Source: Pavona decussata
Taxonomy: Eukaryota
Direction of reading: 5' to 3'
Assembly (NCBI GenBank): GCA_977016875.1
Contig: CDRNST010000195.1
Coordinates: 3,410,001 to 3,474,000 of the forward strand
Length of the DNA: 64,000 nt
Positions 1 to 23,992 of the stretch are shown here, in pieces. The first letter of the stretch is position 1; each line of letters starts with the position of its first letter. The notes beneath the pieces are model-generated. The model did no database searches. It was not told the origin of the DNA and saw only the letters and a program-made list of their open reading frames with translations. The translations under genes and the position numbers were made by a program.

Positions 1-361
1 ATAAATTACATAGTAAAAGGACAATTGAATAAAAAGGTTACTTTTGAGATCAATGAAAAGTATATACAAGCAAGTTGGGCAAGAAGAACATTTTTCACAA
101 TTGAACAACGGAAAATCAAAATCAAAATAAACAGAATGAGAAGCTGATGTGTAATCAGAGAGCTCTTCTACGATTTCATTTGCTTTGGACAACATACAGT
201 CTAGTTGCCGTCATCGTTGCTAAAGCGCTCTGTTGAACTGGAAACCGTGGTGAAGACACCCCAACCGGCCATGGATTAGCTCAATCATCGCACTTGCAAA
301 AAAGCTCTAAAGGCTATATAATTAAATCTTTGAAATGAAAGTTTATTGATAATGTTATTAA

Positions 362-597
362 GGAGGCAGCGTGGTCGAGTGGTTAGGGCTTGAAATCCGG
401 AGGTCCCGGGTTCAAGTCCTGCTCTAAGCACTAGACGGAGTTGTTTCTCGGACGCGCTTGTAAATAGCCAGCTGGTCTGCCTCCTGCCAGTTGGGATTTT
501 TAAACATGTTATTTTCAATTTAAATTATTTCTTTGTGAAGGTTAATGCTCGGCCCCAACAGCACTTGTGCTATAAACACTGCCGAGGGTAAACAAAG

Positions 598-653
<56 letters not shown>
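362..653 (+). mobile_element. tRNA-derived SINE with (ATT)n tail
   Basis: Pol III A box (TGGTCGAGTGG) and B box (GGTTCAAGTCC) in a tRNA-like head with deletions. The body (CTTGTAAATAGCCAGCTGGTCTGCCTCCTGCCAGTTGGGATT) resembles cnidarian SINE2 families, and the element ends in (ATT)n at ~599-653. Confidence 0.8.
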
Positions 654-1485
654 GTGAATAATAAATCGTAAAATTTTGTCACCAGGATGAAATTAATAAC
701 TAAGAAAAAACGGTACCCCCGTCATGCCTATTGTCCCTTGAAGTTGGTCACAATGACCAAGCAGGAGCCAAACTGCGTGCCTCCCACTCCTCAACGATTG
801 ATGAATGATTTCAAAATCCTCCACTTTTTGCATTTTTCTACCTTGTCAAGTGTTTCATTCATTTTCATGTCTGACGGTAATCAGTGAATCAATGTTATAA
901 GAAAAAAGAGCAAAAATCCAGAAAACAGTAACAGGCCAGGGACTGGACTTATCTAGCCTGAGGGGCAAGCATTTCCAAGGAATTCTCTGCGTCGAAATTG
1001 GCTTCTCTGAGTAGAAAAGTGCAGACCCTGGCCTTTTTTCACTCTGTGACCGCTTTCTGGATTTTTTGTTTTTGTACATGATCCAAAATTTATGAAGGAA
1101 AAACACTGAAAGATAGAGTAAAGGATTTCAAAAATACTTGAAAATTAGTCAAACTAGATTGCATTATAAACTGGGGAAAGGAAATAGAAATTATTGTTTG
1201 TTACGTTAGTGGTTTGCTGGTTTTGCTGACGGCCTACTTCGCTGGTTACCCTTGAGCTTTGTGTCTTTTTTCCTCAAGGGCGTTGGGCCCTAAAATGTTG
1301 AAACTCTCGACATGTATGGCAGCAATCTAAACACAAGAAACATGTTTGTCATAATGAGGTAGAAAGAGAGAACGGGGCAAAATTAGTGGGGGTTGCTAAG
1401 TGGAGAAGATTCATAAAAGCTGAGAAATTACTAAAGTTACCCCAACGTACCAAGCAAAACCGAACATTCAAGTGCTCAAAATATT

Positions 1486-2692
1486 TTATGACAGTTTGAT
1501 TGTGTTCGACAACCATTCCCAATCCACAACATAGGTGGCCCAAGCTCTATGATTTGTGTTGACTGTTTTAACGAATAGATTAGCGTCACGATGTATGTTT
1601 TGACAATAGCGAAATTTGTAATGGTTTGTAAGAAGAAAAAGTATTGAGTGAAAAGGCAAAATAAGAAACGATTTTTGACTATTTTGTTTTTCACCTGGAC
1701 GCCTCTTACATACTTTCTCTTGTGTCCCGTGTGGTTTATATATCAACTTTAGGTGACTTCTAGAAGCCGTTGGAAACTCTAAGTTACATTGGCCAATACA
1801 AATCAAAGATCTTGGGTTACCTGTGGCAACGAATGAATGTACAAACAAACAAATGAATTGGTGATTAATACTTACAACTTGGTAGGCAACGACGCAAGTC
1901 ATTGTCTTGTAAGTTGCATCTGAGACCCCCTTCTTCAGCAACTCGACTCCCAGCGTCGTGCCTTTGGTTGTTGGAATCCTTTCTGCTCCATTGCTGTCCT
2001 CTTTTTACTTGTCCATGACTGGGCAATCTTGTAGGAGACTTTTGCTTATTTAAAATTTCCCTTCTACTTTGGCGGCGGGTTGCTTGCCTTTGTTTTGTTT
2101 GTCGCGTCCGCCTTTGCTGTCGCAAATCACGCTGTTCTCTTTCAATATCTGGCTCTAGGAAAGTCATGTCAATGATGTGATCTGTAACATACAAAATGAT
2201 ATATAAATATAACGCAAGTGTAATAATCTCCTTTGTATATTATGATCTGTAATTAATCTTACCTTGTGGTTGAAGAGCCATTGTTGGATCCCTTGACTGG
2301 ATTCTATCAAATATGTTATTGCCTAAAAGAAAAAGGTCATCAATTACAATTTTAATTTTACGGAGACATATTTGGTAGAGATTGAGTTCATCTTTAAGAT
2401 TGCTTACGTTAGCATGCTTTTCTGAGTTCGTATGTGCAGCGCCTGGAAAATGGTCGTTCTGAATACCTGGCAATAAATTTGAAATTCGGAAATTGGGCCG
2501 TTAAGTCATTTTGGATAATGGCTAAATTAGGGTTTCGTCTCATATACCTCTCGCCTTTTGAGCCTTGCGGAGATCCGAATTTTCTTTGCACCATTTGTTC
2601 AAGTTTATTTTTCAATATTACCACCCCAAGAACTAACTCATTTTCAAAACGTACCCCAACCGTCGCACTCTGGAACGTTTGTATTTGATATG
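1486..2692 (-). pseudogene. Five-exon orphan gene remnant; Arg/Gln-rich middle and Cys-rich C-terminus
   Basis: Exons 2692-2408 (285 nt), 2322-2263 (60), 2154-1876 (279), 1820-1695 (126) and 1625-1486. All four introns are phase 1 with GT donors, and the first four exons are multiples of 3. There is an in-frame TAA at 2411-2409, and the last acceptor reads AA instead of AG. Confidence 0.65.
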
Positions 2693-2900
2693 CTGAAGTT
2701 TTGTGTTACATTTCTAGACAACAAAATCTTTACTCCAGCCGGAAAAAAAAAATCATTGCGCCCTTAGAAGGTTGTAGAGATAAGCACAAAATGAATCGGA
2801 AATCGTGAGTGCCGAAAACACAATTTTGTAGGGAAAATCGGTTTTTAAATTGGGAACCCTCACTTTACTGATGCAAATTGGAAATTTCTTTTAATTCGTT

Positions 2901-3229
2901 GGTCGGACCACCACTCAGGGTCTTTAAATAACTGAGGAGAAAGTGCTGCCTTTGCTCTGACAGCTGCAAATGGTTAGACTTTCTAGTCTTCTCGGATAAG
3001 GACAATAAATCGTAGGCCCCGTCTCACAAACCTTGCTTGTAAATAACTCTGTGGGACGTTAAAGAACCCACTCACTGTTTGCAAAGAGTAGCGGACGTAG
3101 TTCCCGGTGTTGTGGTCTGGTCTTTGTGTGTATATTATCATGGTTGGGTGGGAAAATGCTCGGAGACATTAGCTGCATTAAGCTACTCTACAATCCGAGG
3201 GTAAATAAAGATTGATGATGATGATGATG
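2901..3229 (+). mobile_element. 5'-truncated Deu/Nin-domain-type SINE
   Basis: Conserved core CTCGGATAAGGAC...GGGACGTTAAAGAACCCAC...AAGAGTAG...TTCCCGGTGTTGTGG. The tRNA head is missing and there is a (GAT)n tail at ~3213-3229. Confidence 0.7.
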
Positions 3230-3419
3230 AACCTCGGGAATCCCATTTGGCACGTTTTCCGCAAAATTTGTATTGGAACCTGATGCCGCATAATTGTAGC
3301 CAATACAATTTTATCTTGTTTATGCCTAAAGCCCCCCCCCCCCCCCCCTCCAGGAAAATGTGTTTTTCCAAAACTTTACTCTTACCCCTCTAAAACCACC
3401 GGGTAAACATATTTAGGAA

Positions 3420-4151
3420 CTATTTTTTCACACGCTTGAACGAAAAAAGTAAAAATACTAAATTAAAGTTCACCTGGTTGTTGATAGTGTAGTTACAGAG
3501 CCGGGTTGCGCAACTGCAACAGGCCACGGCCTTATGAAGAAGTTTAAGGTACAGTTCCTTGTGACGAATGGGTTTCTGTGGCACCTCCAATTCCAGTTCC
3601 TTACAGATGTTTTGCAGCATCGCAAGCTTGAATTGCTCCAGCGATCCATCCTTCTTCATTGCACAAATATCGTACTGATCGTACGTGATGGGGTGCTGTG
3701 GGGTGATGGAGGTCACCACTTCTCTTGCGCGTGCAAAGTTCTCTTCCTCTTGACAGGCCTGTCTGTTAGCATCATCAGGAATTTGCTTGTGCACCTTCGC
3801 AGGACGGACACGGTTGGTACCTAGTGCATGCCTGATTTCACGGGAAACAACATCCCTGTCCAATTTTTTTCCCATGGTTTTGCCGTTGGCAAACTTGGCA
3901 CCGAGCCCCTGCAGTGATTTCTTTACAGAGGCACTGCATTCAGAGAGTACTCGCAGCATAGTCGACTCACTGAAAGGTTTGAATCCCGTCTCCAAACAGT
4001 ACTGGGTGTGTTGTTGAACCACTCTCTGGGGGATCAATAGGCATATCACACTGGGTACTTCGATCGTGTCACCTGACGACAGCTTCAAATTTTTTAGCCT
4101 GAATGGTAGATCTTGTACCAGATGGGGACTGGTTATAAAGCCCAGAAAGTG
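3420..4151 (-). mobile_element. Internally deleted Sola3-like transposase (N- and C-terminal parts fused, DDE core missing)
   Basis: HFLGFITSPHLVQDLPF..LKLSSGDTIEVP..YCLETGFKPFSESTMLRVLSECSASVKKSLQGL is joined in frame at ~3902 to the C-terminal-type segment KFANGKTMGKKLDRDVVSREIR...CCSC. Confidence 0.55.
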
Positions 4152-4206
4152 AGATCAGCACACAGAAAAAATCCTTCTAGCCAAGCATGGCTGGATGCAA
4201 GCATGA

Positions 4207-6108
4207 CAAATTTATGCCGAGCACAACACTTCGGACCATGCAGAGTATAAACTTAGCCAGTCCGCGAAAGAATGCTATCAGAAGTTTGCCAGGGCAACTC
4301 CAGAAAGTGGCACAGAGAAATCAAACTCCAAAGCTGGGAAAAATGTTTTAAAGTTGGCTCTTGTGCTCCATGTTTTCTACGACCGCCTCAAGAAAGCCCT
4401 GGATTCCTCTGTTGGTACGACACCCAGAGTTATCACAGAGGACCTAATGAAGAAGGCAATCAGTCTATGTTCAACACTTTCACATGTCAAGGCATTGATG
4501 GATCTGGTAAGGATTTCACTGACAGTTCAATAGCAATATTATTCTAATCATATAGTTCAATAAAATATCCATACCTCCCTATAGAAGGTGTTAACCCACT
4601 CATCTTTAAAGTACGACGAGGCTTCTTACATTTCTTTATCATTTGTATCTTAAAAAAACTTTGGAATTTCCACTCTCTTCTTTTTTTTGGGGGGGGGGGA
4701 GGTGGGGAGTATGGAGCTAACACCCCTTTGTATTTGACAAGAATGCTAAGTTCTGAACTTAGAGCACTTCAGTATTTCTTGTAGGTTGCTGATGTACTGT
4801 ATTATTGTAGTCATACAGGGTACAAAGAAGGGCCAGTGGATTTTGCTGTCAGGCTTGGGGATTTTACCCATCTTCTTGCCCAAAAGGGCAAGTGAAAGTT
4901 TTTTGGGGAAGTTTCTTAAGGAATTAATTCGGTCAAGCTGGAAAATGGAACTTCTTTGACAGTATTACATTGTGTGGTCCAGGAATAATCATACCTCCCC
5001 CATGGAAGGTGTTTTCTTTTGAACCTCCCACCCCCTGGAATTTCCAGTTCAGCTTCATACTTTTCCTTAAACAATTTGGCTGTTGAGACCCCCCCCCCCC
5101 CCCCCTCCCCTTGGAATTTCCATTGACATTCCATGAGGAGAGTATGGATATTTGTGGGAACCACACATTTGTATTGTAAGTTTCCATATAAGCAACAACA
5201 ACCTTTATTGACTCTTTAAACTGAATTTTTTTTATTTTATTTGTAAATAACATCAAGAGAGTCTAGGGGGTAAAAGATCCACATTTTTTTTTCGCGTTAG
5301 CCCCCGTACCTGTTTATACTATTATTTTTTTTTTTAAAAAGAGAAGAAGCAGAACATGGAGCTGTAAGAGATGAAACTGGAAACATGGATTTTAAATTAA
5401 TATGCGGGCCACATTTTGATTAAAAAAAAAAAATCACTCCTTGGAAGAAGTATAATTGTATGCATTGGATGTATGGAGACCCTGTTAAAATACAAGCCTT
5501 TATGTTTGTGTTGTATTTTTTTGGGAAGTAGAGCCTACAACGACACTCTTATGCTTTTATTCAGGCCAACTGTACTTGGGTAATAGGTCCCCTGAGCTGG
5601 CCGGTCCACCCTTTTTACCTTTTTTTTTTTTTGAAGTTTTTTTATCATGATGATGATCATCAGTTGTAGTTATTCTTCATTACAATTAATATCATTACGA
5701 TTTTAGGCTGCCACACTGAAGGAAGGGGAGCACACTATTTGAACTGGTGCATCAGCTGATAAAATAAAGCAGAGGGTTTTAGGTGAAACAGCTGACATGT
5801 TCACGACAGCGAAGAGAGTATACACCAGTTTCTCTTCAATTCGTCGCCCATCACCTTCTTTTGTAGTTGACCAGTTCAATGAATTGGAGAGAGAGGGTCT
5901 TGGAGTTTTTAAGAACATCCACCGTTCTAAAGTCTTTTTCAAGAAGGTACCTGAATTATTCATCAACGAAGAATACAAGCTTGGTAAACACAATACCACA
6001 TTCCAGACTTACAAACAATTCTTTGAGAAAACTGATGAATTCTATGACGACAATCAGCGCCTGGAGCTCGTAAGGCAGTACCCATGGAAAGAGGATGCCC
6101 AAAGGTGA
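4207..6108 (+). pseudogene. DUF3987/YfjI-like protein C-terminal exons (4207-4506, 5707-6108)
   Basis: Exon 1 encodes YKLSQSAKECYQKF...SKAGKNVLKLALVLHVF...ITEDLMKKAISL. A phase-0 GT-AG intron spans 4507-5706, and exon 2 stays in frame with ORF 5797-6108. In-frame TGA codons occur at 4204 and 5740. Confidence 0.55.
4971..5167. mobile_element. MITE with TGTGTGGT(T)CC termini, inside the intron
   Basis: Imperfect TIRs TGTGTGGTCCAGGAATAATCATAC / GTATGGATATTTGTGGGAACCACACA. Confidence 0.6.
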
Positions 6109-7470
6109 AAATACCTCCCTGTCCCTGAACTAACCCAACAGCAATAAGATTTAGTGCCCCTTTAGTCTGAAACACTAAAGTATGGTTGTTGACATTATCA
6201 TCAAAAATTATAAATATATAATAATACTGCTCCCATAAATACTTGCATCTGATTGGCCGACAGTAGAACAATTTATCATTGTATCACTGCTGAACAATTG
6301 AAAATTAATTGTATGACTGTCGTTCAGAGTTTCGCGCCAAAAACGGCGGCTGCACCACTGTCACAACTAGTTTCTAGTCTACTTCAGGGGTATTCATTTT
6401 GAGAAATTGTCATAAAGGCTAGATTTTAAGTAGACTCATAAAATCAAAGTAAACTCATCATCATCAACTTTCAAAGCCAAAGTAAGCAAATCAATTCAAA
6501 AAGACCGCCTGGCACATTTTTTAATCTGTTTAAACCTGATCTTGCTGTGCTCGATTGGATGCTTGTATTTATGGTAGCATTATTATCAATAGGAGAACTG
6601 TACTTTTTCTCAAAACAATTAGGGATTAATTGTAGTCATGAACAAATTGGTCTGATCTTTTTACTCATACAATTAATCGCTAAAAATTTTTATTGTTTCT
6701 CGAATAGACCGTTTTCCTATACAAATTGATTTTCAAATTATATTCTTCACAAAAATTGATGATGCTTCACCATTATTTAAAATAAATATGAAATTTTAAA
6801 ACCTTGCCCATGCAACATTTACTTTCATGGTGAGAACATATTTGTTTTAATCACAATTATCATTGTTACCCCCTTGCTTATCATGTTTTGTTTATCGTGT
6901 TGAAGATGTTTCAAAATTGTTAGGGTTGTCAGTGGCACTGCCATTGTTATAATAACTACATTTATTTCAGATAATTATAAATTCTTAAATTCTATAATAA
7001 AAACTATTGTATAGCTATATGAACTGGAACAAAATAATAAACATTTATATGTTAAACTAAAATCACTACATTTCAGATTACCGGTATTATAAGTTCTTAA
7101 TTTTTATTTATATGTATTTTCTCTGAATTTCAATCTATAGTTATTAATAGAAATTATTATTATAATAAAAATTATTGTATGACTACATGAACTGGAACAA
7201 AATAATGAACATTTAATATATGTTACACTAAAATTAGATTATTATATAAATTATCAAAATAATAAACATTGATATTACGAGGAATATACATGTGGTAGTT
7301 TATTTCAACTGTGTTATCATGAACAAGCCATAGTCAACTGACACATCCTTAAAAAAATCATGGAATTCCCTGCTTTTCATGAACAATCTATAAAATTCAA
7401 TCGATTTTTTCTTCCACATTGATTTGAATCAAATGAATACTATTGGAATCACATAATAATCATTATTAAT

Positions 7471-7898
7471 TAATTATTATATGGCCATGTCTCATAAGGA
7501 CTGGGGACTACTGAATTGACAAATTTGATTGCCTGAAATCAATATTGACTGTGGTCTAGATCCTCCCATCCAGACCAGTTAAATTTTACGGTAAAAAAGT
7601 TGCAAACTAAAATGCCAAATATTGACTATTTTCTACTAAAAGTGCCAAAAAGCCTAACAAGAAAAAAAAAAGAGTAAAGAGGGAGGACAAGCAAACTTTG
7701 GCAGATTTAGGTTCAGCTCATTGCCATTCCCAATCAAAAAGGTCAGCCTGTACGAACCAGTTTCATTGAACAAATTACATTGTAGTTTTCTTGTTTGGCC
7801 ATATAGTAAACATCTTATTAACCGAGCTTGGTCGGTCTGTATGGGAGAATCTTGACCTCAGCCGTGAGTACAGGCCTCACTGCATTCGGTATGTACTC
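7471..7898. mobile_element. Truncated non-autonomous Crypton-like repeat
   Basis: Starts TAATTATTATATGGCC...GATTG and carries a ...TTAACCGAGCTTGGTCGGTCTGTATGGGAGAATCTTGACCTC... segment resembling cnidarian Crypton-type non-autonomous elements. Recognised from memory only. Confidence 0.35.
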
Positions 7899-8000
7899 AT
7901 CTCTTAATCTCTTATGATTTTCAAGGTCCTAATAATGATTACAGTACTAAGATGTTACATTTTTTGTGTTGGCTGCATACAGGAGTTCCATTTCCTTTTT

Positions 8001-11000
8001 TTACTCACTTAAAGCTGCAACCTCTTTCTTCATCATGAGAGAAAAAAGGTTTTTTTCTCTGATGATCTTGTCCACCCACCTTTTTACTTTTTCATATGAG
8101 GGAATGCTAGTGACTCCAGCAGTTGTGATAACTTGCTTAAAGAGCTTAAAAATGTTTTCATAGTCAGGAGCGGCATTTTCTTGAGATCCCATCAGGCCAT
8201 TGACCAGCTGCTGAAGGACAAAAATCTCAAAGTCGCCCAGTTTTTCAGGTGCCAGTGGCTCATTCTTTCTCTCCAAGTACTTCAATGAAGACAATGTGAT
8301 GTCATCATGTTTCCTTCGTTTTCTGGTCTGCCCTTCTTTGACGGCTGCATTTTTAGGTCCATATGGGTTACCACAATTAAAGCATCTACATGATGGACTG
8401 CATCCTTGCAATGCTTGAAAGCATTTGCATCGTGAACCAAAGTTGCTGCAAAATGACCTTTCTTTGTCTTTTGCACCTCCTCGTCCACAAGAACAACACT
8501 GTGTCCTGACTTTGTCTGGACTTGCCTTGTTTAAGTCTTGGCATACTGCTCTCTCTTTTGGGAATACAGGGTCATAGTGACCTTTTCCTGACTGGTTAAA
8601 GGCCATGTATAGGGGTACACTGGTGAGTGGGCTCACCCTTGGCAGCAAGGGTATCACAGGGTAGCTGACGATAGACGAGAACACTACTATTGGGAGTTTT
8701 AGTATGTTCGTCAGGGCAAGCAAAACACTGTTTCCAAGTTCATAATCGAAGATGCCTGGTTCCAAGAATGATTGTGCAGTGTCTTCCAATGAAGATTTCT
8801 CAGAACTGGTTAAAAAACATGCATATTCCTCACTGTTAATCCCTAGCCATTCAACTACCACCAACTCTCTCAGTACAATGTTCCTGTTAGAGAGGTCTTG
8901 GTTCCTGTATATGTTTAAGGACTGTAAATGTTGCTTAACTGCATCATTATCACACTCAAGCATTTTATCAAGTGCAAAGGAGATTGAAGTGAAGCAGCAG
9001 TCACCATCACCAGGAACTGACATTTTCTCAAAACCATGGTTAGATACAATTTCGTCTAGTTTTTTCTCTGCCACCAAATATTCACTCTGTTCATGACAAT
9101 CAGTGTGGGAGAAAAGGAGAAGTGTTGAGGGAGCATGAATCCAGGAATATTTGTTTGCAAGTAGTGGAATTTGTTCCTTTGAGAAAGTATGTGATGTAAT
9201 TTTAGTCATAGCAACAGCTCTGTTTATGATTGTTTCTTGTGATTCCATAGTTAAATTTTCATTGTCATCATCTGAATCAGATTCATAACTGGATGAGGCA
9301 CTTTCCTCCTCGAGATCAATGTCGAGGTTGTCACATAACATACTTAGGCTTTCACTTTCTTCTCCAAGGGCAGAAAAACAAGGAATATTATTACCAATGC
9401 CAAACTTTTCACGACACATTTGTTCCCCCAAAGTAAGAAATGTCTGAAACCATTGACTCACAGACTTGCATATTCTGTGTTCTCTTCCTTTTTGTTTTGC
9501 ATCACAAACATTTAGTTTGTAAAATGCAGTGGTTAGAAGTGCAACTGCTAAAGCAACACCAATGCGGTCTTTCTTAAGCCATTTACGCAACCTCTTGTGG
9601 ATATTCTCGTTGCGGTTTGTTCCAACTCCTGGTGGAATACCTGATAAGCAGCCCAATCTAACATGCTTCATAACTTTGTTTATTTCAGCTACAGCTTTAT
9701 CTGGTAGCACCCTTAAGTCATTTACGAGCTCAGTTGACCATTTTCTCAAGAAGTCCTGCAAGTTCTTTTCCATCTTGTCTGGTGGGGGTGTTGATCTTTT
9801 CCTAGAATGTCCAAAATCATTGTCATCCCGAAAACATAATCTCAAATTTTTAATCATAGCTTGTCTGACTCCTCTCAAGTCAGCTGTAACACCTTTTCTT
9901 GGTATTTGATCCAAAATACGTTTGAGGGCGTGGAATAAATCTAGTTTGATGGGGACATTAGATCCAAATATGGCATTGATCTTTTTCTTAACAGAACAGC
10001 AATTGTCAATTATAATACCTTCCAACTCTTTTTGGGCAATTTGATGCCGTTCCTTCAGCCCAGTTAGAAGGGACTCCACTGTGTCAATAGATGTACCTCT
10101 CGCAAGCTGCCATGCAAGTACCTTATTCTCCTCATTCATGACAATAAACACGGAGTTATACAGCTTGACCCACCGCTTGTTTTGCCAATAGCCAATGTTA
10201 GCAGATATTTTGAACGTGTGGTCTGCTGATAGCCACTTACCATACTGACTAGCCATATGCTGAGTGTACATATTCTCACAGTCACTAAAAGCTCGCAAGA
10301 ATGCCCTTGTGATTAACATTCTTCCAATGAAATCCTTCTTTGGATTGAAAAGGGGAAAATTAGCTGCTGCATTTTGGCGTTGTGAATAGTACAAGAAAGC
10401 TCTGCTGCAGTGGTAAGAATTGTGCAAATTCAAAAGCATGTTCTCAATGTCCTGTATACAAAGCCCAGCCTGAGTACTGCTTGAAATAAAATCAAAAAGT
10501 TCCTTTGTCATCCCAGACTTGTGAAACAGAATAAACGGAATTCTAATACCTGCCTCACGGATTGCCTTCAACAGCTCAGGGTCATGTGCAACAACCTGGT
10601 GATGTTTACCACTGCAGAGATACACACATGAGACAAGAAGGACTTGCTGCTGAATCGAGAATATGGTGCGAGGCGATGTATGGGAGCTTGTTCCATCATT
10701 CCATCTCCACACGCGAAGAGACGACTGACAATATGGACAGGCTAGATCGCATTCTGTTTGGACCAGGGGATTCCATAGAATAACCGGTGGAATCATATAA
10801 GCCTCCGGGTCGTCACTGGGCGCGTGTTGCCCGCTAGATGGATAAAACACATTGCTGAAGCATCGTTTCGCAGCCGATGACTTTGAGGAAGCAATACAAT
10901 TTTGTATGAACTCTCGCCACGTTTGCGGAATATTAATTGGAACTACCACCGGCAAAGAAATACTTAGAAAAAGCACGCAAAAAATGACAAAACTAAGGTT

Positions 11001-11054
11001 GGTGGACGCCATTTTTTGAGACCGCAAGTTAGCAAAACAGCGGATTAAAACCAT
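8001..11054 (-). CDS. Intact Dada/MULE-type DDE transposase (DUF6729-like N-terminus) fused to OTU cysteine protease and CXC domain
   Basis: Uninterrupted 1017-codon ORF; the likely start is AAAATGGCG at 11012. Motifs: zinc finger CPYC...YLCSGKHH; catalytic SADHTFK, IDNCC, LDLFH (DxxH), GTNRNENIH; acidic linker; OTU VPGDGDCCF...GHYD; Cys-rich CSCGRG...RCKCFQALQGCSPSCRCFNCGNP; basic NLS-like TRKRRK. Confidence 0.85.
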   Translation of the reverse strand: MVLIRCFANLRSQKMASTNLSFVIFCVLFLSISLPVVVPINIPQTWREFIQNCIASSKSSAAKRCFSNVFYPSSGQHAPSDDPEAYMIPPVILWNPLVQTECDLACPYCQSSLRVWRWNDGTSSHTSPRTIFSIQQQVLLVSCVYLCSGKHHQVVAHDPELLKAIREAGIRIPFILFHKSGMTKELFDFISSSTQAGLCIQDIENMLLNLHNSYHCSRAFLYYSQRQNAAANFPLFNPKKDFIGRMLITRAFLRAFSDCENMYTQHMASQYGKWLSADHTFKISANIGYWQNKRWVKLYNSVFIVMNEENKVLAWQLARGTSIDTVESLLTGLKERHQIAQKELEGIIIDNCCSVKKKINAIFGSNVPIKLDLFHALKRILDQIPRKGVTADLRGVRQAMIKNLRLCFRDDNDFGHSRKRSTPPPDKMEKNLQDFLRKWSTELVNDLRVLPDKAVAEINKVMKHVRLGCLSGIPPGVGTNRNENIHKRLRKWLKKDRIGVALAVALLTTAFYKLNVCDAKQKGREHRICKSVSQWFQTFLTLGEQMCREKFGIGNNIPCFSALGEESESLSMLCDNLDIDLEEESASSSYESDSDDDNENLTMESQETIINRAVAMTKITSHTFSKEQIPLLANKYSWIHAPSTLLLFSHTDCHEQSEYLVAEKKLDEIVSNHGFEKMSVPGDGDCCFTSISFALDKMLECDNDAVKQHLQSLNIYRNQDLSNRNIVLRELVVVEWLGINSEEYACFLTSSEKSSLEDTAQSFLEPGIFDYELGNSVLLALTNILKLPIVVFSSIVSYPVIPLLPRVSPLTSVPLYMAFNQSGKGHYDPVFPKERAVCQDLNKASPDKVRTQCCSCGRGGAKDKERSFCSNFGSRCKCFQALQGCSPSCRCFNCGNPYGPKNAAVKEGQTRKRRKHDDITLSSLKYLERKNEPLAPEKLGDFEIFVLQQLVNGLMGSQENAAPDYENIFKLFKQVITTAGVTSIPSYEKVKRWVDKIIREKNLFSLMMKKEVAALSE

Positions 11055-11084
11055 ACGTCAAGTATGTGCTCTTTTGTGTGACAT

Positions 11085-11468
11085 CGAGCCATCGAACCAT
11101 CGAACCAACGATCCAACAATTCACCGAACCAACGATCCACCGAACCAACGATCTATCGAACCAACGAACCACCGAACCAAAGATCCACCGAACCAACGAT
11201 CTATCGAACCAACGAACCAACGATCCACCGAACCAACGATCTATCGAACCAACGAACCAACGATCCACCGAACCAACGATCTATCGAACCAACGAACCAC
11301 CGAGCCAAAGATCCACCGAACCAACGATCTATCGAACCAACGATCCACCGAACCAACGATCTACCGGACCAACGATCTATCGAACCAACGATCTATCGGA
11401 CCAACGATCTATCGAACCAACGATCCACCGAAGCAACGATCCATTGAACTAACGAGCCGCCGATCCGT
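11085..11468. repeat. Minisatellite: 48 in-register 8-bp units (CGAACCAA/CGATCCAC/CGATCTAT)
   Basis: Parses exactly into 48 octamers with no indels, and 44 of them begin with CG. It lies 30 bp upstream of the transposase ORF. Confidence 0.95.
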
Positions 11469-11929
11469 TAGACCACCAATCATCAGTCTCTCGTTACGGA
11501 GTGACGTCACTGCTGACTTGGTATATGGTGCACCAGCCAACCACGGTCTGAAAAGGAACTTTCAATATTTAGAACAACTTTGTATTTCACGCTACGCGAA
11601 ATACAGTTTTATCCTGGAAATGCGAGGATGTATTTAGCCATGTGGGACAAGCTCATGTATGTATATGTTCTGCGCCATGTAAGTAAATGAGTTGATATTC
11701 TAAAACACTAGTAAAATTTGTCTTGGGTAATTTTATCTACGCTTTGTTCGAGCGACGTAAAGTTTGAGAAAATCTTCTAAAATACTGCAACTTGAAGTAA
11801 ACAAGTTGCCCGCCGCGATTCTGTTTTCGCTGAGATTTACCGGAAGTTAAAAATAATTGGTTCTCATGTGACATTTGATGTGACAGTGTTGCCCCCAAGG
11901 GAGCGACGCCATTTGAGGGCATTCGTAAA

Positions 11930-12071
11930 ATGTCTGGGCTCAGCGGCAGGCGTTTCCTTTCCTTCCCCGCCCCTCCCCCCCGCTCCTGCTTTTTGCTCCT
12001 TTTTAACAAATGCCCTCGCGCGCTTGCCTCACTTGGCTTGAAGGAAACGGAAATGACTGCTACGCAGGCTA
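11930..12071. mobile_element. Academ-type non-autonomous element end
   Basis: Terminal CTGCTACGCAGGCTA (reverse complement TAGCCTGCGTAGCAG) preceded by a pyrimidine-rich subterminal tract. Confidence 0.5.
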
Positions 12072-14624
12072 ATTGTCATTCTCTTAGTTCCCTATGTATT
12101 GTCTTGTTGGACATTTTTAATTTTAGGTTTCGTTGTAAATCCTGCTGTGCGGATGTGCTTGGCATCTTCATCGGAAAGTTTAACGGTCCATCGCAATGAC
12201 AGTTCTTCACCATTCCATGGTGTCAATTGACTTCGTAGTGGTTTCTTGATGAACACGATCTTTACTGATGCAAATTGGAAATTTCTTTTAATTCGTTGGT
12301 CTCTATTTCTCGGTTTCCAAAGAGCTGTTGCCCCGACATGAAGCTCACCTTCGGAAATTGCTTTATAGCGTGACAGACAATGTGCATCCTCCCCTGATGG
12401 TCTTCACTTTAAATGCCACGTAGGCTGTGGTTTTCTTCCAATCAGTTTTCTGGGATACTTTTCAATGTGCCATAGGAATCATACTGGATTATTAAAAAAA
12501 TGATACTATTTCTAATATTTAGTACATGGTGGCTCAATTTTGTGTAGCATTGGGGCCCAACCATTTGGATTTTTTTTTTTTTGCATAGTTCATCAATGTG
12601 TAGATAAATTATACCATGTTCCTGTCAAGAGTTAAACCTGGCTAAAAGTTTCTGTGAAGGGAGATTTTAGTCTTATCAAGTATTGTCTCCAAGCATGGGG
12701 CTGTGTTGACCTGGCTTTCTAGCGATATGCGTCCCTGTAATCAGCAGCAAATTAATGTTACGCACAAAATAAAAATATACAAAGAGAGTTGCCAAATTTA
12801 GCAAAATTCGGAACTTCACCATATAATTAATATTTTATAAACTAAGTTAAATTTAGAGCAATCATGCAGTGAGGCAAGGGAGTGTACAACTGCTCTAATT
12901 CTACAAAACTTTGTGCATAACTTGCATTCAGGAGTTGAAAAAGATTCAAAGTAAGCTGTTGATTAACAGAACTTAACAGTGCACAAATGCATTGCTTTTT
13001 AATTATCCGCACTTCTATTTTTTACCTTGACAGCCTCAGAGTGATGGCTTTCATCCAATGTTGATTCCTCTTGGCTTTGGTTGAACTCTGTGGTAACAAG
13101 AGTAATAAAAAAATGACCTGAACATGTTTTAGTTAACCACTTATCTTGGAATCTATCCCTTTTGATTTACATAGACAAAATGCTAAGTTATTTAATTTTG
13201 CTAACAGTAACCTACTCCTTGAAACAACATGAAACACAATACTGCTGGGTTGACCTAAGTGATACATTTGTTTTGGGGGCTTGTTGCATACATTAGCATT
13301 TATCAGATTTGTCACTTAATGTTTGGTGCAAAAGTAAGCCTATAACCAAAAAAGGAAATACTACGATTTGTATATCAATTAAAGGCAATATATTTAACAG
13401 CATTGTAGTGTCGGAAAACAAACAGTACCTTGACCCCTTGCAAACAATGTATCCTCGAACAGGGCAACCTCAGCTTCCATTTCTGTTGGAGGCATTGCTT
13501 GTTGGCTCTCCTCCTCAGGTCCCGGGCTGTAGTCTACTTCTGGTCTACTGGACAGACCAAGGGCTAAAATCTCCAAAACAGACAACCAGGTTTGACAAAG
13601 AAAGGTAAAAAAAAAAAAAATAGTAATTACGTAAATACTGGCAAAAATATTATTGTGAGATCACTTAGTCCTCAAATTTAATTTATATTTAACTTAATGC
13701 TTGAAGGCATGTTGAGGACCTGCAAGAGCTTTAATTTATGGTTTGTTTTTCTCAGGTTGAAAACTTTCATTTTTAAATGGAAACAAGAAAAATAATATGG
13801 CATTTATAAAGACTAAACAACATTTACTTACCATATCTAACCCATTCTATGAACATTTGGTTCAAGAAGCTCAGTCGAACTTTGTGAGCCCTCCTGGAGC
13901 TCACAGCAACCTCTCCCCCCTTGCCCTTTTTCCTACAGTCTGCCAAACTCCATTGGCAAGGGAAACTGGTACAGATACGCCTTTCTCTACTCCTGCATTT
14001 AAAAAATCCGTGATTTCCTGCAGAAGAATAAGGACATACATTAATTGGGCCTACTGCACAGTTCACTGGATTTGACCTCTCAGTGTCCACACATACACAC
14101 ACAAACCAATGCTATTTCCTATTTAACTAGTTGTATTTTACACTGCCACTAATTCTTCCTTTTTTTGTAGCATAACCAACACATTTTGTCAAGACAGAAC
14201 AATCAATGTTTTGTAAACAGCATTGGCTTCCTTAGGTAGATTGCCCTCTCATTTTTATTTCCCTTTCAAAGGAATTAAACTTTTATTTAACGTGTGTTAA
14301 TATCAAGTTAACCACCACCTCAAATTTTAAATTACTGATCAAGAAATGTTTAAAATAAATATCCCATTTAGACCTCCTGCACCAAGGAGGTTGATGAGTC
14401 CAGAGAGAGGGCATACGGCTTCTCTCCACTTTGTTCCCCAACCATATTCACTGAAGCAAATGGGTTTATCCAGATGTGGACCTGAAAAGGGTGACATTTT
14501 AGCAATCAATTGAAAATGAAAAGAGGGACATCGGGGTTAATGGGAATCGAAGAATAACGGTTGTGAAAAGTTGAGAGAAAAATGGGAGAAGAGAGGGTGC
14601 AAACTAGGAATCACAAGGTGATGA
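12072..14624 (-). mobile_element. Spliced MULE-like element remnant, copy A
   Basis: Homologous to 48312-50161 in three blocks (12072-12462, 13550-13960, 14410-14624). GT-AG exons include ...SSRRAHKVRLSFLNQMFIEWVRY|G and ALGLSSRPEVDY...GQ|G. The 3' block encodes a degenerate PARP-zinc-finger-like WHLK.RPSG..AHC...GELHV...RNF segment. Confidence 0.5.
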
Positions 14625-14631
14625 GTGTTAT

Positions 14632-15352
14632 TCAATAGATCTCTCTCAAATAAAAATTAAATAAGTACCAGAAGCGTTTCCACAGTTCCAGTTCTTGTGA
14701 CGCATTACTTGGTGATGGCAGATCAGGAGAGTAATGCTCGATAAGCTTCTCTTGCGAACACTTGACAAGCTTCTGCAAGTTGAAAGGTATCAGCAGCAGT
14801 CCAAGCAACGCTGCTTCTGACAGAGCATTAAAGCGGGTACTCATTTGCTGCAGCAGGTTGTCAAAGAAGGGAAGAAATAATGTGCATCGAAAGTAGGCGA
14901 CTGGTGTCTTGGTATTGGTGTTGTTGGGCAGTGTCTGTCTACCACAAGTGCGCGGGATGGTGATCTTTACGTCTGCTTTCTTAGCCATTTTTTGGATCGT
15001 TCATACACTGAATGCGCAAACACTGTTTTTGCATCCTTGTTAATATCTGCCAGCTGATCTTTCACCACATTAATATGCCTGTATGCCTCAATAACATCCA
15101 ATGTCGAACCCTGTAACTAACGGCTAAGTCCTACAGTGAATCCAAAAAGATGCTTGGCAGTGTAAAAGGCTGCAATGAACACAGGGTTCTTGATTTGATG
15201 AAGCAGCCCTTATTAACGCCTGTTACGTTGAAAAAATCAAAGACTGCTTACAAAATGATAAAATTATTGTATATTTTGACCAAAAAAACGTATCTGACGA
15301 GCTGAAAGGGGGGATCGCGGCGCCCTTGCCACCCCCCCTAAATCCGTCCCTG
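14632..15352 (-). mobile_element. Deleted hAT (Tip100/ZMYM1-like) transposon
   Basis: LQGSTLDVIEAY and IPRTCGRQT..N....P..YFR..LFLPFFDNLLQQMSTRF motifs. A hAT-like terminus CAGGGACGGATTTAGGGGGGG lies at 15352 on the minus strand. Confidence 0.7.
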
Positions 15353-15354
15353 CA

Positions 15355-15489
15355 ATAGGCCATTTTACAGTTGTGTTTTTTAGTGACTTGCCTTGGATTG
15401 GAAGCAAGGCTGGGGGTGACCTTGTTTTGATACAAACCTCACCGTTTTTCACATGTAAAAGCAGACTAGTTAGCATAAGAACAGCATGA
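15355..15489. mobile_element. Half copy of the palindromic MITE at 58471-58711
   Basis: ATAGGCCATTTTACAGTTGTG...ACTAGTTAGCATAAGAACAGCATG aligns to the left arm of the 58.5-kb MITE. Confidence 0.75.
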
Positions 15490-15830
15490 AAAAATAATTG
15501 AAAGACGTTCTAATAATGACACTCATGCACAAAACTCTCGTTTCCGGTTCTGCTGGACAAGGGTAAGAAGAGCTCTGGGAACAAACTTGGTAAGTTTGAG
15601 TAAGTTGATTTTCGGGACCGAAACGTTTTCCGCATTTTTGAGAAATGCGCCCCTGGTACTGTTAGTAGTAACATAAACAATGATTACAATATGGCCCTTT
15701 CAGAAACATGCTGAAATACGGTAAATAAGTTTATAACTGAGAACAAAGTTCAGAAGTGTTGCTTTCAGAGGGCAGCAAAGCGCAGGACAGCATTAGTTTT
15801 TGTGGGACAATCTTTAGGTCATTCTTGATG

Positions 15831-16620
15831 TTACTTCACTTGATTTATTCTCGGAAACATTGAAGATGACGACGATTTTTCATTGCCGTCATCTTCCTTG
15901 TGTATTTCCTCTGAGTCCAAAAGGGCGTGGGAAGTAGACAGTTCCATTGGTAAATCTTTTGAAAGTTCATGTCTGCACTCAGGGCAAGGGATGCCACAAT
16001 TAAAGCAAACTGGTATGTTGTCAAACCAAGGCATGGTACAGGGCTCGTTCACAGAGAAGGCACAGTCCCATTTAGCGTAGGCTGGATTTTTTCTTCACCA
16101 TTGATCTTGGCACCACTCAATCATTCTTCTTGTTGCTTGCTCTCCTGGTTTCCAACCCTCTTTTGCTGTTTTTACTTCTTCCTTCATTGCCGTCATCCAC
16201 TTCCTTGTGTATTTCCTCGGAGTCCAAAAGGGCGTGGGAAGTAGACAGTTCCATTGGTAAATCCTTTGAAAGTTCATGTCTGCACTCAGGGCAAGGAACA
16301 CCACAATTAAAGCAAACTGGTATGTTGTCAAACCAAGGCATGGTACAGGGCTCGTTCACAGAGAAGGGACAGTCCTCTTTAGGGTAGGCTTGATTTTTTT
16401 TTTCGCCATTAATCATGGGACCACTCAATCATTCTTCTTGTTGCTCTATCTCCTGGTTTCCAACCCTCTGTTGCCGTTTTTACTCCTTTCTGGATCCTGG
16501 CTTTTAAATGGTCGAACGTCTCGCATTCAACAGTTTGCAAACAAAATTTGCGACAACCTTGTGCATTTTCCAGGTGAATTTCAGGTCCGACATGTTCCTT
16601 CTTTGTTTCTTAACAAATCC
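15831..16620 (-). pseudogene. Cys-rich coding remnant with ~300-bp tandem duplication (15881-16181 / 16185-16482)
   Basis: Two near-identical units encode GWKPG.ATRRMIEW...CPFSVNEPCTMPWFDNIPVCFNCG.PCPECRHEL, with stops and frameshifts. Confidence 0.6.
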
Positions 16621-21099: not shown

Positions 21100-22340
21100 C
21101 GCGGATTTGGTTTGCTACTTTGTCGCATACATCGCTTACAGTCACTGATTTGTAGTTGCTAGTTTCTGCCTCTTTCAAAACGCTATCGCTGGGAATAAAC
21201 TGAAAGCCGTTTGTGAGTCTGTCAATAATAAAGTCCCTGTCACGATCTGTTGCAAGATTTCGTATCCAGGCCTGTTGGTTAAGTGAGGATGTGATTGTCT
21301 ATGTGTTTATGTGTGTTTATAAGTCACGCTGTGGTTGCTGTTGGATGTTCGTGCTGTGGGTGACCCTGGTTGCAATTTGGCACCAAGCAAACATGCTGAA
21401 ATTGGCAGTTTGGCCAGTGGCATCTGGTTTGGGAATTAAATTGGCGGCAGATAGGAGTTGTGGGTGACGTTTGTGGTTGGCGGTTAAGGCGTGGGGGAAG
21501 TCTCTGTGCGTTGGGTGAGGTGGTAGCTGGGGTCTGCGAAGGACGGTGTTTAACGAGAAATCTGGTGTGAAGGTGCTGCGAGTTGCTCCCCCACCGAAAA
21601 CCATATGCGCACTGTAATTTACAATACCTGTTATCATATGCCAAAGCCGATGCGAGTGTATGAGACTCGAGGAGCGTGTCAAATTTTATTGTATAAGTCA
21701 AGTAATCAGAAATGGCGGTAGTGGTTGCAGACAGAAGCTCGTGCATAATTCGCGAGTTTGCGGCAACCCACAAAGAAAGGGTGATTTGTTCCAATTTTGG
21801 TTTTCCCCTTGCTGAGCGAATTATGATTTTTGCCCCACTGGAATAGCCTTTTTCACGGTTAACTCTGCTCATTTGAATTACAATGAAATATAGCATGTAT
21901 GTGAGGCAATTTCGGGCTATTTTGTAGTTTTAGCCCGAAATTGCCTTGCATCCACGTTGGATAACATTGTAATGCAAATGAGATAAATCAACCGTGAAAA
22001 GGGCTATTGTTTCGAATTTCTTGCTCTTCTTTACGATAGTCATGCGTTTCCAGGTTTACAAAGTCTGGAATTAACAGAGGTTTCTCACCTTGTTTAGCGC
22101 TCGCACCCTTATGCTGTTGGCCGAGAAACACGTGCGGATTGGTATCCAGTCTGGGAAGAGTTGATGGTGTTTAATGCAGCAGGCGTTTTGCATGAAGAAA
22201 AATCGGTCAATCCTAGGACCAGAAGAGATTCATCCAGTGAGCTGGCACTTTCGAATTTCTTTAGAATTTCCTCTAGCCCTCCATCGCTCGCCAGGGACTT
22301 TGTCGTGACTGGGTCGTGCGCATCAGTAGCATCGCCAATC
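21100..22340 (-). mobile_element. DIRS/Ngaro-like retrotransposon gag fragment plus start of pol
   Basis: PLLIPDFV and W..AN.RIM..L...DY..Y...YD..Y..LQ...GFRWG motifs; CRQFN...C.WPNCQFQHVC..C...H zinc fingers; then pol-start-like LNQQAW...DRDFIID...NGF. Confidence 0.7.
21842..22008. mobile_element. Palindromic MITE inserted in DIRS gag
   Basis: TIRs AATAGCCTTTTTCACGGTT / AACCGTGAAAAGGGCTATT. The gag frame resumes on both sides. Confidence 0.75.
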
Positions 22341-23992
22341 GAAGATTGTGGGTTGACGTCCTGTCACAACTGTCTCAACTTTTTCAGTGCTTATGTCTTG
22401 CACTTCACACGGTTGGAATTAATTTAAGATAGAGTGTGAGGGGAATAAGACTGATAATGTCTGTGCAATTTATATTCGTTTTTTATAAGCTGCCTACGAT
22501 GATTAGTCGAAATTCATCTTTTCCACTACAATCGGCCTCCTCCATAAAATGAAATGTATTGTCTCCATTTCAGTTTGTTCCATGATTAAAAATGAGAACA
22601 TTAGCAGCATTTCTTCTAAACCTAAACAATTAATTTTTCATGTTATTATAAAACGAAATCATAATCACAAAAGCTTACCACAAAGTTTAAATTGATTTTG
22701 AAATCCACCCCTCTAAGTGGGAAGTTTGAATTTCCGAAAACAAATAAAAGGAGAAGTTAAGCCACAACAATTCATTTCGAAACGCCGCCAGTTATCAGAA
22801 ATGCTGCAAAGGCTTGATTAGTCCTGTATCTAAGCTAATATTTTATGAAATTATTATATTTCAACCTTGATTTGAGGGTCAGTAAAGGCATGTCCATCCA
22901 AGGCTTAGTGGAAAGTTAAATGGTCTGACTCCTTCAGCCAATATACATTGTAACATTTAACGATCGACCACGGTCAGCAGACAGACCGTCCAGAGTTCTG
23001 ACCATAGTCAGTATAAAACAACAATACCATGAAACCAAAATTTTGCAAATGAGAGTTTTGGACGGTCAAAGGCAGATTGTGTGTTTTTTTTGTGTAAAAA
23101 AAGAAAAGAACAAAAGAAAGAAAAAAAAGAAAAAATGCAATAAACAACCTAGGTTGGGTTCTTTGAACTGTCTGACTTTCGTGATGGCTGATCCAAACAT
23201 GTTAAGCAGTACCTCGTAGAACATGCTGTGTGTGTTCGTACTGGTGGATGTCGCGAAGGACTTAGCTTTATCATTACACAAGGTGTAGTAATGAATGACT
23301 AAATGGCTTTGCAAAAAGGAAAATGAAGACAAATGGCTCCGTTAAAAAGGAAACAATAATGCGGAATTTAACACTATTAGAATTACATTCCGTAAGTGAG
23401 TATTTGGTGAGGCACGTACATGTGCTAGACCTTTATTTACAAATTTGGGCGTCATCAGAGGGAAAGAGAACATAATTTCTAACAGCGTATCAAGTGGAAG
23501 CGACGAGAAAGCTTGCCTTCACTTATGACAAGCTTACATTTAATTTCAATAAGAAAATACTTACTTTTAAATAATGACGCTGTGCTGAAGCTCAGTGATC
23601 CTCCCTTTGTCATACTTTCAAGCAAAAGAGGAATGCCCACAACTGGATGTCTGGTTTACTTTCAAACTTGATACGAGTGTTGCCACCTTTTATATCAAGC
23701 ACAGCGAGATGCCCTTCGGCCAGAAAATTCTCTCACTTTTGGATGAGGGCCATTCAACGCAATTGATCTGGGCGGAATCCAGATTTAAATTTTAATAGCA
23801 TACATGTACACTTTTCCATTGGTCTATTCAAGTTAAATGACAGTCATTAGGAAAGTAATTATCAGTTTGAAAGTGATCATAGGCTATGAAATAATACTTA
23901 TAGTTGCCAGTGGCAAATGAGGCACTCCTGAGTAAAACTCCTCCGTTTCTGGGAACTTGAATGTAAGGTTTGTCTTTGTTTTTATGGTTTAT

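Follow-up and report, generated by a model that had tools for sequence, protein, structure and literature searches.

The window analyzed here, a stretch of 64,000 nucleotides from Pavona decussata (contig CDRNST010000195.1, positions 3,410,001 to 3,474,000), contains at 4208..11538, on the minus strand, a segment that we read as a copy, truncated at one terminus, of a two-gene DNA transposon that is young and present in few copies; to this reading, together with the mechanism proposed for it below, we assign a probability of about 0.85. As delimited by copy alignment, the truncated copy comprises the right terminal inverted repeat (TIR), an intact transposase gene, a spacer, and the 3' end of a second gene, and it is missing the left ~2.2 kb of the element, including the left TIR. 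The transposase gene (8001..11054, minus strand) encodes, as a single polypeptide of 1017 codons starting with ATG, a predicted fusion of a DDE transposase with an OTU cysteine protease and a CXC domain, while the second gene encodes a putative ATPase of the DUF3987 family. Comparison with the other copies shows that the complete element spans ~9.5 kb, with two TIRs of ~480 bp, two inward-facing genes, and 8-bp target site duplications (TSDs). This group of two-gene transposons, which joins a Dada-like enzyme to a Mutator-like layout, is apparently undescribed.

Structure of the element and of its copies

Over 4208-11391/11541, the window copy is 99% identical to the copies on C250 and C166, and the flanks diverge at 4208, where the left break abuts unrelated repeats, and past 11538. 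Since there is no long inverted repeat in the window, where no inverted copy of 11053-11541 was found, the TIR structure was revealed only through the other copies. The terminal 75 bp of the element (11464..11538, minus strand) start with 5'-GGCTGGTGCACC and harbor the palindrome TGACGTCA at 11502-11509. They are followed inward by a tandem array (11085..11463) in which a 16-bp unit, with one CpG in each half, is repeated 23.7 times (48 x 8 bp). The array ends 30 bp upstream of the transposase ATG, constitutes the subterminal part of the TIR, and recurs inverted at the other end of the C166 copy. The genome contains the terminal sequence at 10 sites whose flanks are unrelated, and contigs from two other sequencing runs diverge exactly at 11538 into different flanks.

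In the 602-Mb genome, the family amounts to roughly six loci, with copies that are 97 to 99% identical. A second intact transposase gene, 99% identical to the one in the window, is located at C250:1158457-1161504, and decayed or partial copies (97 to 99%) were detected on C166, C20, and C186; divergent lineages with 29 to 38% protein identity, at least one of them intact, are present as well. The sole full-length copy is that on C166, which measures ~9.5 kb, carries the terminal ~480 bp inverted at its other end, and is flanked by the TSD CGAAACGG; its transposase frame is broken. Each TIR consists of a conserved tip of ~40 bp (GGCT...TGACGTCA) and about 24 tandem 16-bp units; the transposase gene starts 30 bp inside one TIR, and the DUF3987 gene starts near the other. 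Deletion derivatives on C186 and C20 keep both ends and are flanked by 8-bp TSDs of their own (AACAGTAC and TAAACCCC, respectively), and the smallest mobilized derivative is a 358-bp mini-element (C318:939523-939880; L029 224-581) that is composed of one TIR array and two termini within the perfect 8-bp TSD GGATTATG. A preliminary description of the sequence had proposed a recently active transposase and had called for a count of genomic copies; the similarity of the copies, the TSDs, the deletion derivatives, and the other insertion sites seen in the other runs bear out recent activity for the family. The intact copy on C250 carries the replacement C352S in the invariant DNCC motif of the transposase, and it is likewise without the left TIR.

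The remnant of the second gene corresponds to its last ~103 codons (about 4207-4515, plus strand) and was identified by tblastn with amino acids (aa) 259-361 at 98% identity. Intact genes of 361 aa, convergent with the transposase gene, are present in the copies on C166 (L014:3384-4466) and C250. The C166 protein matches Pfam DUF3987 (PF13148) with an E value of 3.9e-22 and 79.4 bits (cutoff, 27), and it contains the Walker A motif APSGAGKT and the Walker B motif CIDEC. DUF3987 is a superfamily 6 (SF6), MCM-related family, one member of which is a proven 5'-3' helicase (PMC11724360, PMC4889955). The DUF3987 gene recurrently adjoins transposase homologs in other assemblies, and in the same genome C8, C354, and C90 each harbor fragments of it next to transposase homologs. 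Among four elements, the two genes give congruent values of pairwise identity (70.6/68.9, 54.4/61.8, and about 45/38%). From these sequence features, the complete elements are predicted to encode a P-loop ATPase of the SF6, MCM-related helicase family. Lacking the left TIR and a functional second gene, the window copy cannot move by itself, but it remains a potential source of transposase, acting in trans, for the copies and mini-elements that bear TIRs at other loci of the genome.

The same organization is found in at least five other lineages and species. In five other loci, L021, L030, L031, L033, and L035, TIRs enclose both genes. The TSDs, which in loci of other species were read by walking the arms outward past the internal palindromes TGACGTCA and TATCGATA, are 8 bp long in L030 (CAAAATTA, flanking an element of 9005 bp), L033 (GAATTTGG), L035 (TGTAATTT), and L031 (AAATTTTT). 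In L021, inverted arrays at both contig ends enclose both genes and the TSD is unreadable; the C91 lineage has TIRs and the TSD CTTTCAAG, and DUF3987 was not found there. Altogether, nine independent insertions from six lineages have TSDs of 8 bp without exception. The TIRs measure ~480 bp in the window family and 360 to 950 bp in the other lineages, and the array unit varies by lineage (8/16, 9/17, 9/19, 17, or 37 bp). Five other lineages have the terminus pattern in common: GGYT, about 30 nt, and then TGACGTCA or a close variant of it (ACGTCA in L031). The TSD sequences are mutually unrelated, and in Rfam scans of window positions 1-16000 and of 80 kb surrounding four further insertion loci, no family attained its gathering score; insertion is thus shown to occur without specificity for a sequence or for small RNA genes. 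The 9005-bp element of L030, which belongs to another species, sits between a gene for a protein-primed B-family polymerase and a gene for an rve integrase (2952-3599, 21524-22390), so that its insertion site may be a Polinton/Maverick-like element. In L036, from another lineage, ~305 tandem 9-bp units (13352-16109) lie directly downstream of the transposase homolog, where no DUF3987 was detected.

Between the convergent genes of the window copy, the spacer (4516..8000) contains no long open reading frame (ORF) and includes nested high-copy repeats at about 4968-5169 and 7787-7897. The latter is a repeat of ~110 bp with more than 30 genomic copies of 89 to 91% identity, often adjoining an inverted partial copy, and resembles a miniature inverted-repeat transposable element or a short interspersed nuclear element. 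The spacer also has a direct duplication (6993-7063 and 7161-7234, 88% identity), and contigs from other runs show length variants of it, with skips at 6869-7005, 7046-7272, and 7197-7255. To the left of the truncation, at 2901-3231 and 3229-3802, lie a young ~330-bp unit (more than 25 copies, 94 to 97%) and a ~575-bp unit (85 to 90%).

Domains of the transposase-OTU-CXC protein

The ORF has exactly the coordinates and the ATG start given in the preliminary description, and all the motifs named there were found in it. Its designation as the only intact ORF stands in that no other ORF in the window exceeds 500 aa; it does not extend to shorter frames, as three consecutive ORFs of 401, 488, and 364 aa lie on the plus strand at 24641-28588. 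The transposase motifs are DHTFK (278-282), DNCC (350-353), DLFH (372-375, the DxxH motif), and E483 in NRNEN; those of the OTU domain are GDGDCC (682-687, with Cys686 as the presumed catalytic residue) and GHYD (825-828). The N-terminal finger is formed by C106, C109, C147, and H152, and nine cysteines make up the CXC region at about 853-894. In an alignment of 23 homologs, retrieved by word search with 25 to 70% identity, D350, C352, C353, D372, H375, E483, and H486 are invariant and D278 is near-invariant. Across the wider family, D278 is conserved in 197 of 208 segments, D350 in 204 and D372 in 205 of 218, H375 in 197 of 218, and E483 in 166 of 176, so that the DDE/DxxH residues are retained in more than 90% of the 218 family segments. 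The OTU Cys and His are conserved in 69 and 67 of 77 domains, respectively (D683, C686, H826, and D828 in 60 to 69 of 77), and each of the nine CXC cysteines in 74 or 75 of 75. Because these residues are conserved across the family, the motifs are not chance matches.

Sequence searches of PDB with the whole protein and with the transposase profile yielded nothing useful, and fold prediction was needed. An AlphaFold2 model of residues 75-560 has a predicted local distance difference test (pLDDT) score of 87 and a predicted TM-score of 0.82, and its closest fold is the IS256-family transposase ISCth4 (Foldseek E value, 5e-8; VIA-align Z, 14.9 over 328 residues); weaker matches are the P element transposase (Z, 9.8), Hermes (Z, 9.0), retroviral integrases (Z, about 9), and RAG1. 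The predicted DDE core, with a helical insertion and the residues D278, D350, D372xxH375, and E483, corresponds to 9375..10244 on the minus strand, the strand of all the domain coordinates that follow. It is preceded by a CCCH zinc finger, with the four conserved finger residues, and a helical region (aa ~85-270; 10245..10802), which together resemble DUF6729: this Pfam family matches the equivalent part of the relative P0020 and scores above threshold in the relatives P0215 to P0217, precomputed Pfam annotations list DUF6729 and OTU for relatives recovered by the transposase profile, and the feature-based look-alikes of the protein are DUF6729 clusters.

An acidic low-complexity linker (aa ~560-660) connects the transposase to the OTU domain (D683, C686, H826, D828; 8550..9074). 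A profile of aa 640-1017 searched against PDB matched the MSL2 CXC domain (2lua_A, 3.7e-7), OTUD3 (2.4e-5), and A20 (2.7e-3). The AlphaFold2 model of the C-terminal third has a pLDDT of 74, and its top Foldseek matches are all OTU deubiquitinases, namely, Otu2 (target-normalized TM-score, 0.82, the highest), OTUD3 (0.80), and OTUD1; nairovirus OTUs are also among the structural matches. The predicted OTU fold, found by both profile and Foldseek, and the Cys/His/Asp set agree with the earlier description of a catalytically complete protease. The CXC domain, with its nine invariant cysteines, is located at 8358..8498, and what had been noted as a CXC-like cluster can be specified as MSL2 type, Pfam MSL2-CXC matching six relatives as well (best, 7e-7). 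The end of the protein (8004..8354) comprises the basic residues RKRRKH (911-916) and a helical tail that is conserved, is modeled as three helices with pLDDT of 75 to 91, and was detected by its profile in 38 of 57 long family members. The Pfam check proposed earlier had a mixed outcome, since the ORF protein alone gives just subthreshold matches to OTU and Otubain, whereas OTU, DUF6729, and MSL2-CXC are all found in relatives. On the strength of these models and profiles, a DDE transposase, an OTU protease, and a CXC domain are confirmed as the three predicted parts of the protein.

At its N terminus, the protein has a signal-peptide-like hydrophobic stretch (codons ~18-40; 10935..11003; Kyte-Doolittle 19-residue mean, up to 2.74). 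A similar stretch is present in 27 of the 60 family members that have an N-terminal extension, versus 7% of internal control segments. The stretch is followed by a conserved amphipathic helix, as is also the case in the relatives P0030, P0042, P0111, P0128, and P0151.

In a library of 1.8 billion proteins, 4166 clusters are matched by the transposase profile, and 710 of these matches have E values of 1e-30 or lower; the few named members are annotated as "uncharacterized protein" of a jellyfish and of a sponge. Retrieved members of at least 750 aa contain OTU in 48 of 57 cases, CXC in 43, and both in 35; the fusion of transposase and OTU is the standard architecture of the whole family.

Comparison with known transposons

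As they were defined, Dada elements have no TIRs (just short subterminal repeats), have TSDs of 6 to 7 bp, and insert strictly into genes for small nuclear RNAs or tRNAs (PMC3706591, PMC8869645); their genes are mostly multi-exon and encode an N-terminal CCCC zinc finger as well as a CCHC one at the C terminus (Kojima & Jurka 2013, PMC3706591; PMC8869645). When we compared the ORF protein by eye with Dataset S1 of PMC3706591, all five Dada motif blocks were present in it, and they are conserved in the 218 family segments. The N-terminal finger block, LWxPL..L.CP.C in Dada, reads LWNPL..CPYC in our protein; the first Asp block, MDSTKK or MDHTFKL, reads ADHTFK; the second Asp block, VDRxCC or VDNCC, reads IDNCC; the DxxH block, VRLDI(F/W)H, reads KLDLFH; and the Glu block, H..C(I/L)QDP followed by RGS(N/T)SLE.FH, reads HV..GCLSGIPPG followed by GTNRNENIH. 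The spacing of the two Asp residues is also close (72 aa here versus 68 aa in Dada), and both groups occur in marine invertebrates. On the basis of the motif blocks, the enzyme can fairly be called a Dada-type transposase. However, its N-terminal finger is CCCH instead of CCCC, an OTU domain, a CXC domain, and a helical tail take the place of the C-terminal CCHC finger of Dada, and the group as a whole has array TIRs of 0.4 to 0.9 kb, 8-bp TSDs, unspecific targets, an intronless transposase gene, and a DUF3987 gene. The element therefore fails three of the traits that define Dada, namely, the absence of TIRs, the 6- to 7-bp TSDs, and the targeting of small RNA genes.

The first alternative to be weighed is that we are dealing with a regular Dada superfamily member that has been cataloged already, for example, in Repbase, with OTU, CXC, and DUF3987 as a known feature of one lineage. 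We deem this possible, if rather doubtful. The five shared blocks and the precomputed DUF6729 and OTU hits of the relatives are what would be expected in that case, and Repbase was outside our comparison. Against it stand the long TIRs, the nine 8-bp TSDs, and the lack of any Rfam RNA gene at five insertion loci. Moreover, neither DGNC/DGDC nor GHYD/GHYN occurs as a motif in the published set of Dada proteins, and OTU or proteases are not mentioned in either of the two Dada papers. In the literature, we found no paper on this transposon group or one that connects transposons to DUF3987, to DUF6729, or to the combination of OTU and CXC; DUF6729 is named in no paper that we found.

Turning back to the two-gene transposon, the best structural match to its catalytic region is the IS256-family transposase ISCth4 (6XG8/6XGX), and its layout recalls MuDR and the Mutator-like elements (MULEs), which have in common with it long TIRs, convergent genes starting beside the TIRs, and a TSD within their range of 8 to 11 bp. 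In MuDR, mudrA and mudrB are convergent and each starts next to a TIR. Our group differs from MuDR/MULE in having DxxH instead of CxxH and a second gene unrelated to mudrB; furthermore, no match to the Pfam families MULE (PF10551) or Transposase_mut (PF00872) was obtained at E values of 0.1 or lower in 22 members. Some MULEs carry a Ulp1 protease, not OTU. The earlier assignment to a DDE transposase of the Dada/MULE/IS256 kind is supported by both the predicted fold and the motif blocks.

OTU domains fused to or accompanying transposition proteins are known from Ginger1 and from Helitron-like elements (PMC2836005, PMC11417382). This, together with the frequency of OTU among the long members of the present family, means that the novelty earlier attributed to a transposase carrying its own deubiquitinase was overstated. 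The OTU domain of Ginger1 is C-terminal, as in the ORF protein, but Ginger1 has a Gypsy-type integrase core (GPY/F) and the Helitrons have a Rep/helicase, and neither possesses CXC or a DUF3987 partner. Three further assignments were considered and rejected: Ginger1 identity, since there is no rve/integrase Pfam match and integrases reach a Z of about 9 against 14.9 for ISCth4; KDZ/Zisupton, considered for its CxC domains and 8-bp TSD, since no KDZ Pfam match was found in any of the 22 members; and hAT and P, considered for their 8-bp TSD, since their structures fit worse than that of IS256.

The association of a DDE transposase with a separate P-loop NTPase resembles MuA/MuB of Mu, IstA/IstB of IS21, and TnsB/TnsC of Tn7, as a functional analogy only. 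MuB, IstB, and TnsC are AAA+ regulators, whereas DUF3987 is a family of SF6/MCM-like helicases that phages and integrative elements carry. The CXC domain, in turn, matches those of MSL2 (PDB 2LUA, 4RKG) and of tesmin/LIN54 in its nine-cysteine cluster and its spacing, and differs from them in its location on the C-terminal side of a transposase, in an element with short-repeat arrays in its own ends. The CXC domain of MSL2 binds DNA.

Proposed mechanism, remaining alternatives, and significance

In the mechanism that we propose, the transposase would bind the terminal and subterminal repeats through its N-terminal finger and/or its CXC domain, and D278, D350, and E483 would cut and join the element ends, while transcription of each gene would be driven by the TIR next to it, as is the case in maize MuDR. 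The substrate of the OTU domain may be the transposase itself, or else chromatin and repair factors of the host at the break, from which the domain would strip ubiquitin or a modifier resembling ubiquitin, a role comparable to that proposed for Ginger1 by Bao et al., and the DUF3987 ATPase may aid DNA unwinding or the handling of target or ends. The anti-silencing or self-protective function of the deubiquitinase that the preliminary description had suggested is likewise a hypothesis.

Several points weigh against this transposon reading, or parts of it. In the assembly, no copy combines both intact genes with both TIRs. DUF3987 was not found beside the transposase in 4 of 12 loci (L034, where the flank is short, L036, C91, and C318), and it lies upstream instead of downstream of the transposase in L031, L032, and C90. 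The Logan contigs from the four runs compared, whose RNA label is guessed, also cover the noncoding spacer, so that they are uninformative on transcription, start site, and splicing, and we infer the promoter activity of the TIRs from geometry only. The deubiquitinase, DNA-binding, helicase, and transposase activities are all predicted from sequence and models. Lastly, the signal-peptide-like N terminus is odd for a nuclear enzyme; it is hard to reconcile with the mechanism, which leaves it unexplained.

The distribution of DUF3987 could indicate that one lineage captured it as a passenger with no role in transposition. Its absence from one-third of the loci and from all the deletion derivatives that nonetheless transposed, as well as its varying position, would fit such a passenger, which we nevertheless regard as unlikely. 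Nonautonomous derivatives are expected to be without trans-acting genes in any case, whereas the TIRs enclose the DUF3987 gene in lineages with transposase identities of just 36 to 70%, its divergence is congruent with that of the transposase, its frames are intact, and it also adjoins the transposase homologs on the three contigs named above.

Even less probable, in our judgment, is that the OTU domain is a self-processing protease, cutting the fusion protein so as to free the transposase from a hydrophobic anchor or to separate its modules, and not a deubiquitinase directed at host proteins. OTU proteases of nairoviruses, arteriviruses, and tymoviruses can process polyproteins, nairovirus OTUs appear among the structural matches, and the conserved hydrophobic N terminus and the long acidic linker would suit such a function. 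The best structural matches are, instead, the cellular deubiquitinases Otu2, OTUD1, and OTUD3, and self-processing is a purely inferential proposal: no ubiquitin-like or Gly-Gly cleavage motif was seen, although no search was aimed at one.

The analysis of selection that had been suggested earlier bears on the domestication also considered in the preliminary description. Compared with the 70% identical L021 gene of another species, the dN/dS ratio (ω) is 0.16 overall, with 0.15 for OTU, 0.08 for CXC, and 0.105 for the DDE core, and over all domains it ranges from 0.08 to 0.39, which indicates purifying selection between species. Between the two intact genes of P. decussata, instead, we counted 10 nonsynonymous changes and 2 synonymous ones, which is neutral drift of the copies within the genome. 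Such drift among copies, together with purifying selection among species, marks a transposon lineage and not a domesticated gene. Exaptation of the ORF as a host gene that uses OTU and CXC for a cellular function, to which the intact frame, the long-term selection, and the immobility of a copy without one TIR might point, is very improbable given a 99% identical second copy at a nonhomologous locus, further copies with TIRs and TSDs, differences between the intact copies that are mostly nonsynonymous and include C352S at an invariant residue, and the fact that purifying selection between species is also expected for an active transposase lineage.

A broader version of the two-gene transposon can be put forward only tentatively, and we consider it less probable than its failure. 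It would be an undescribed, superfamily-level clade in cnidarians, sponges, and other marine animals, in which a Dada-related transposase forms a permanent fusion with an active OTU deubiquitinase and an MSL2-type, DNA-binding CXC domain and the element requires its own phage-derived DUF3987 helicase of replicative type, with array TIRs driving both genes inward and with, possibly, a replication-assisted step and a membrane-tethered control of the transposase through its conserved signal-peptide-like N terminus. IS256, the nearest structural relative, transposes by copy-out/paste-in; in view of this, the helicase may point to a replication-assisted step that is unknown in eukaryotic cut-and-paste elements.

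The finding extends beyond a single ORF to a coherent two-gene transposon group, of which the window copy is a truncated member that is predicted to be transposase-competent still. Superfamilies are defined by transposase, ends, and TSD together, and a Dada-like enzyme with Mutator-like ends, 8-bp TSDs, and no target specificity decouples these features, which were thought to go together; this bears on the origin of the RNA gene targeting of Dada. We found no counterpart of a separately encoded SF6/MCM-like helicase in a eukaryotic DDE transposon, and this gene offers a handle on accessory ATPases. OTU was recruited independently by Ginger1, by Helitrons, and by the present group, and a system as compact as this one, with a 358-bp mini-element and intronless genes, brings within reach the long-standing question of what ubiquitin-type proteases do for transposons. 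The more than 4000 protein clusters of the family are labeled just "uncharacterized" or "hypothetical."

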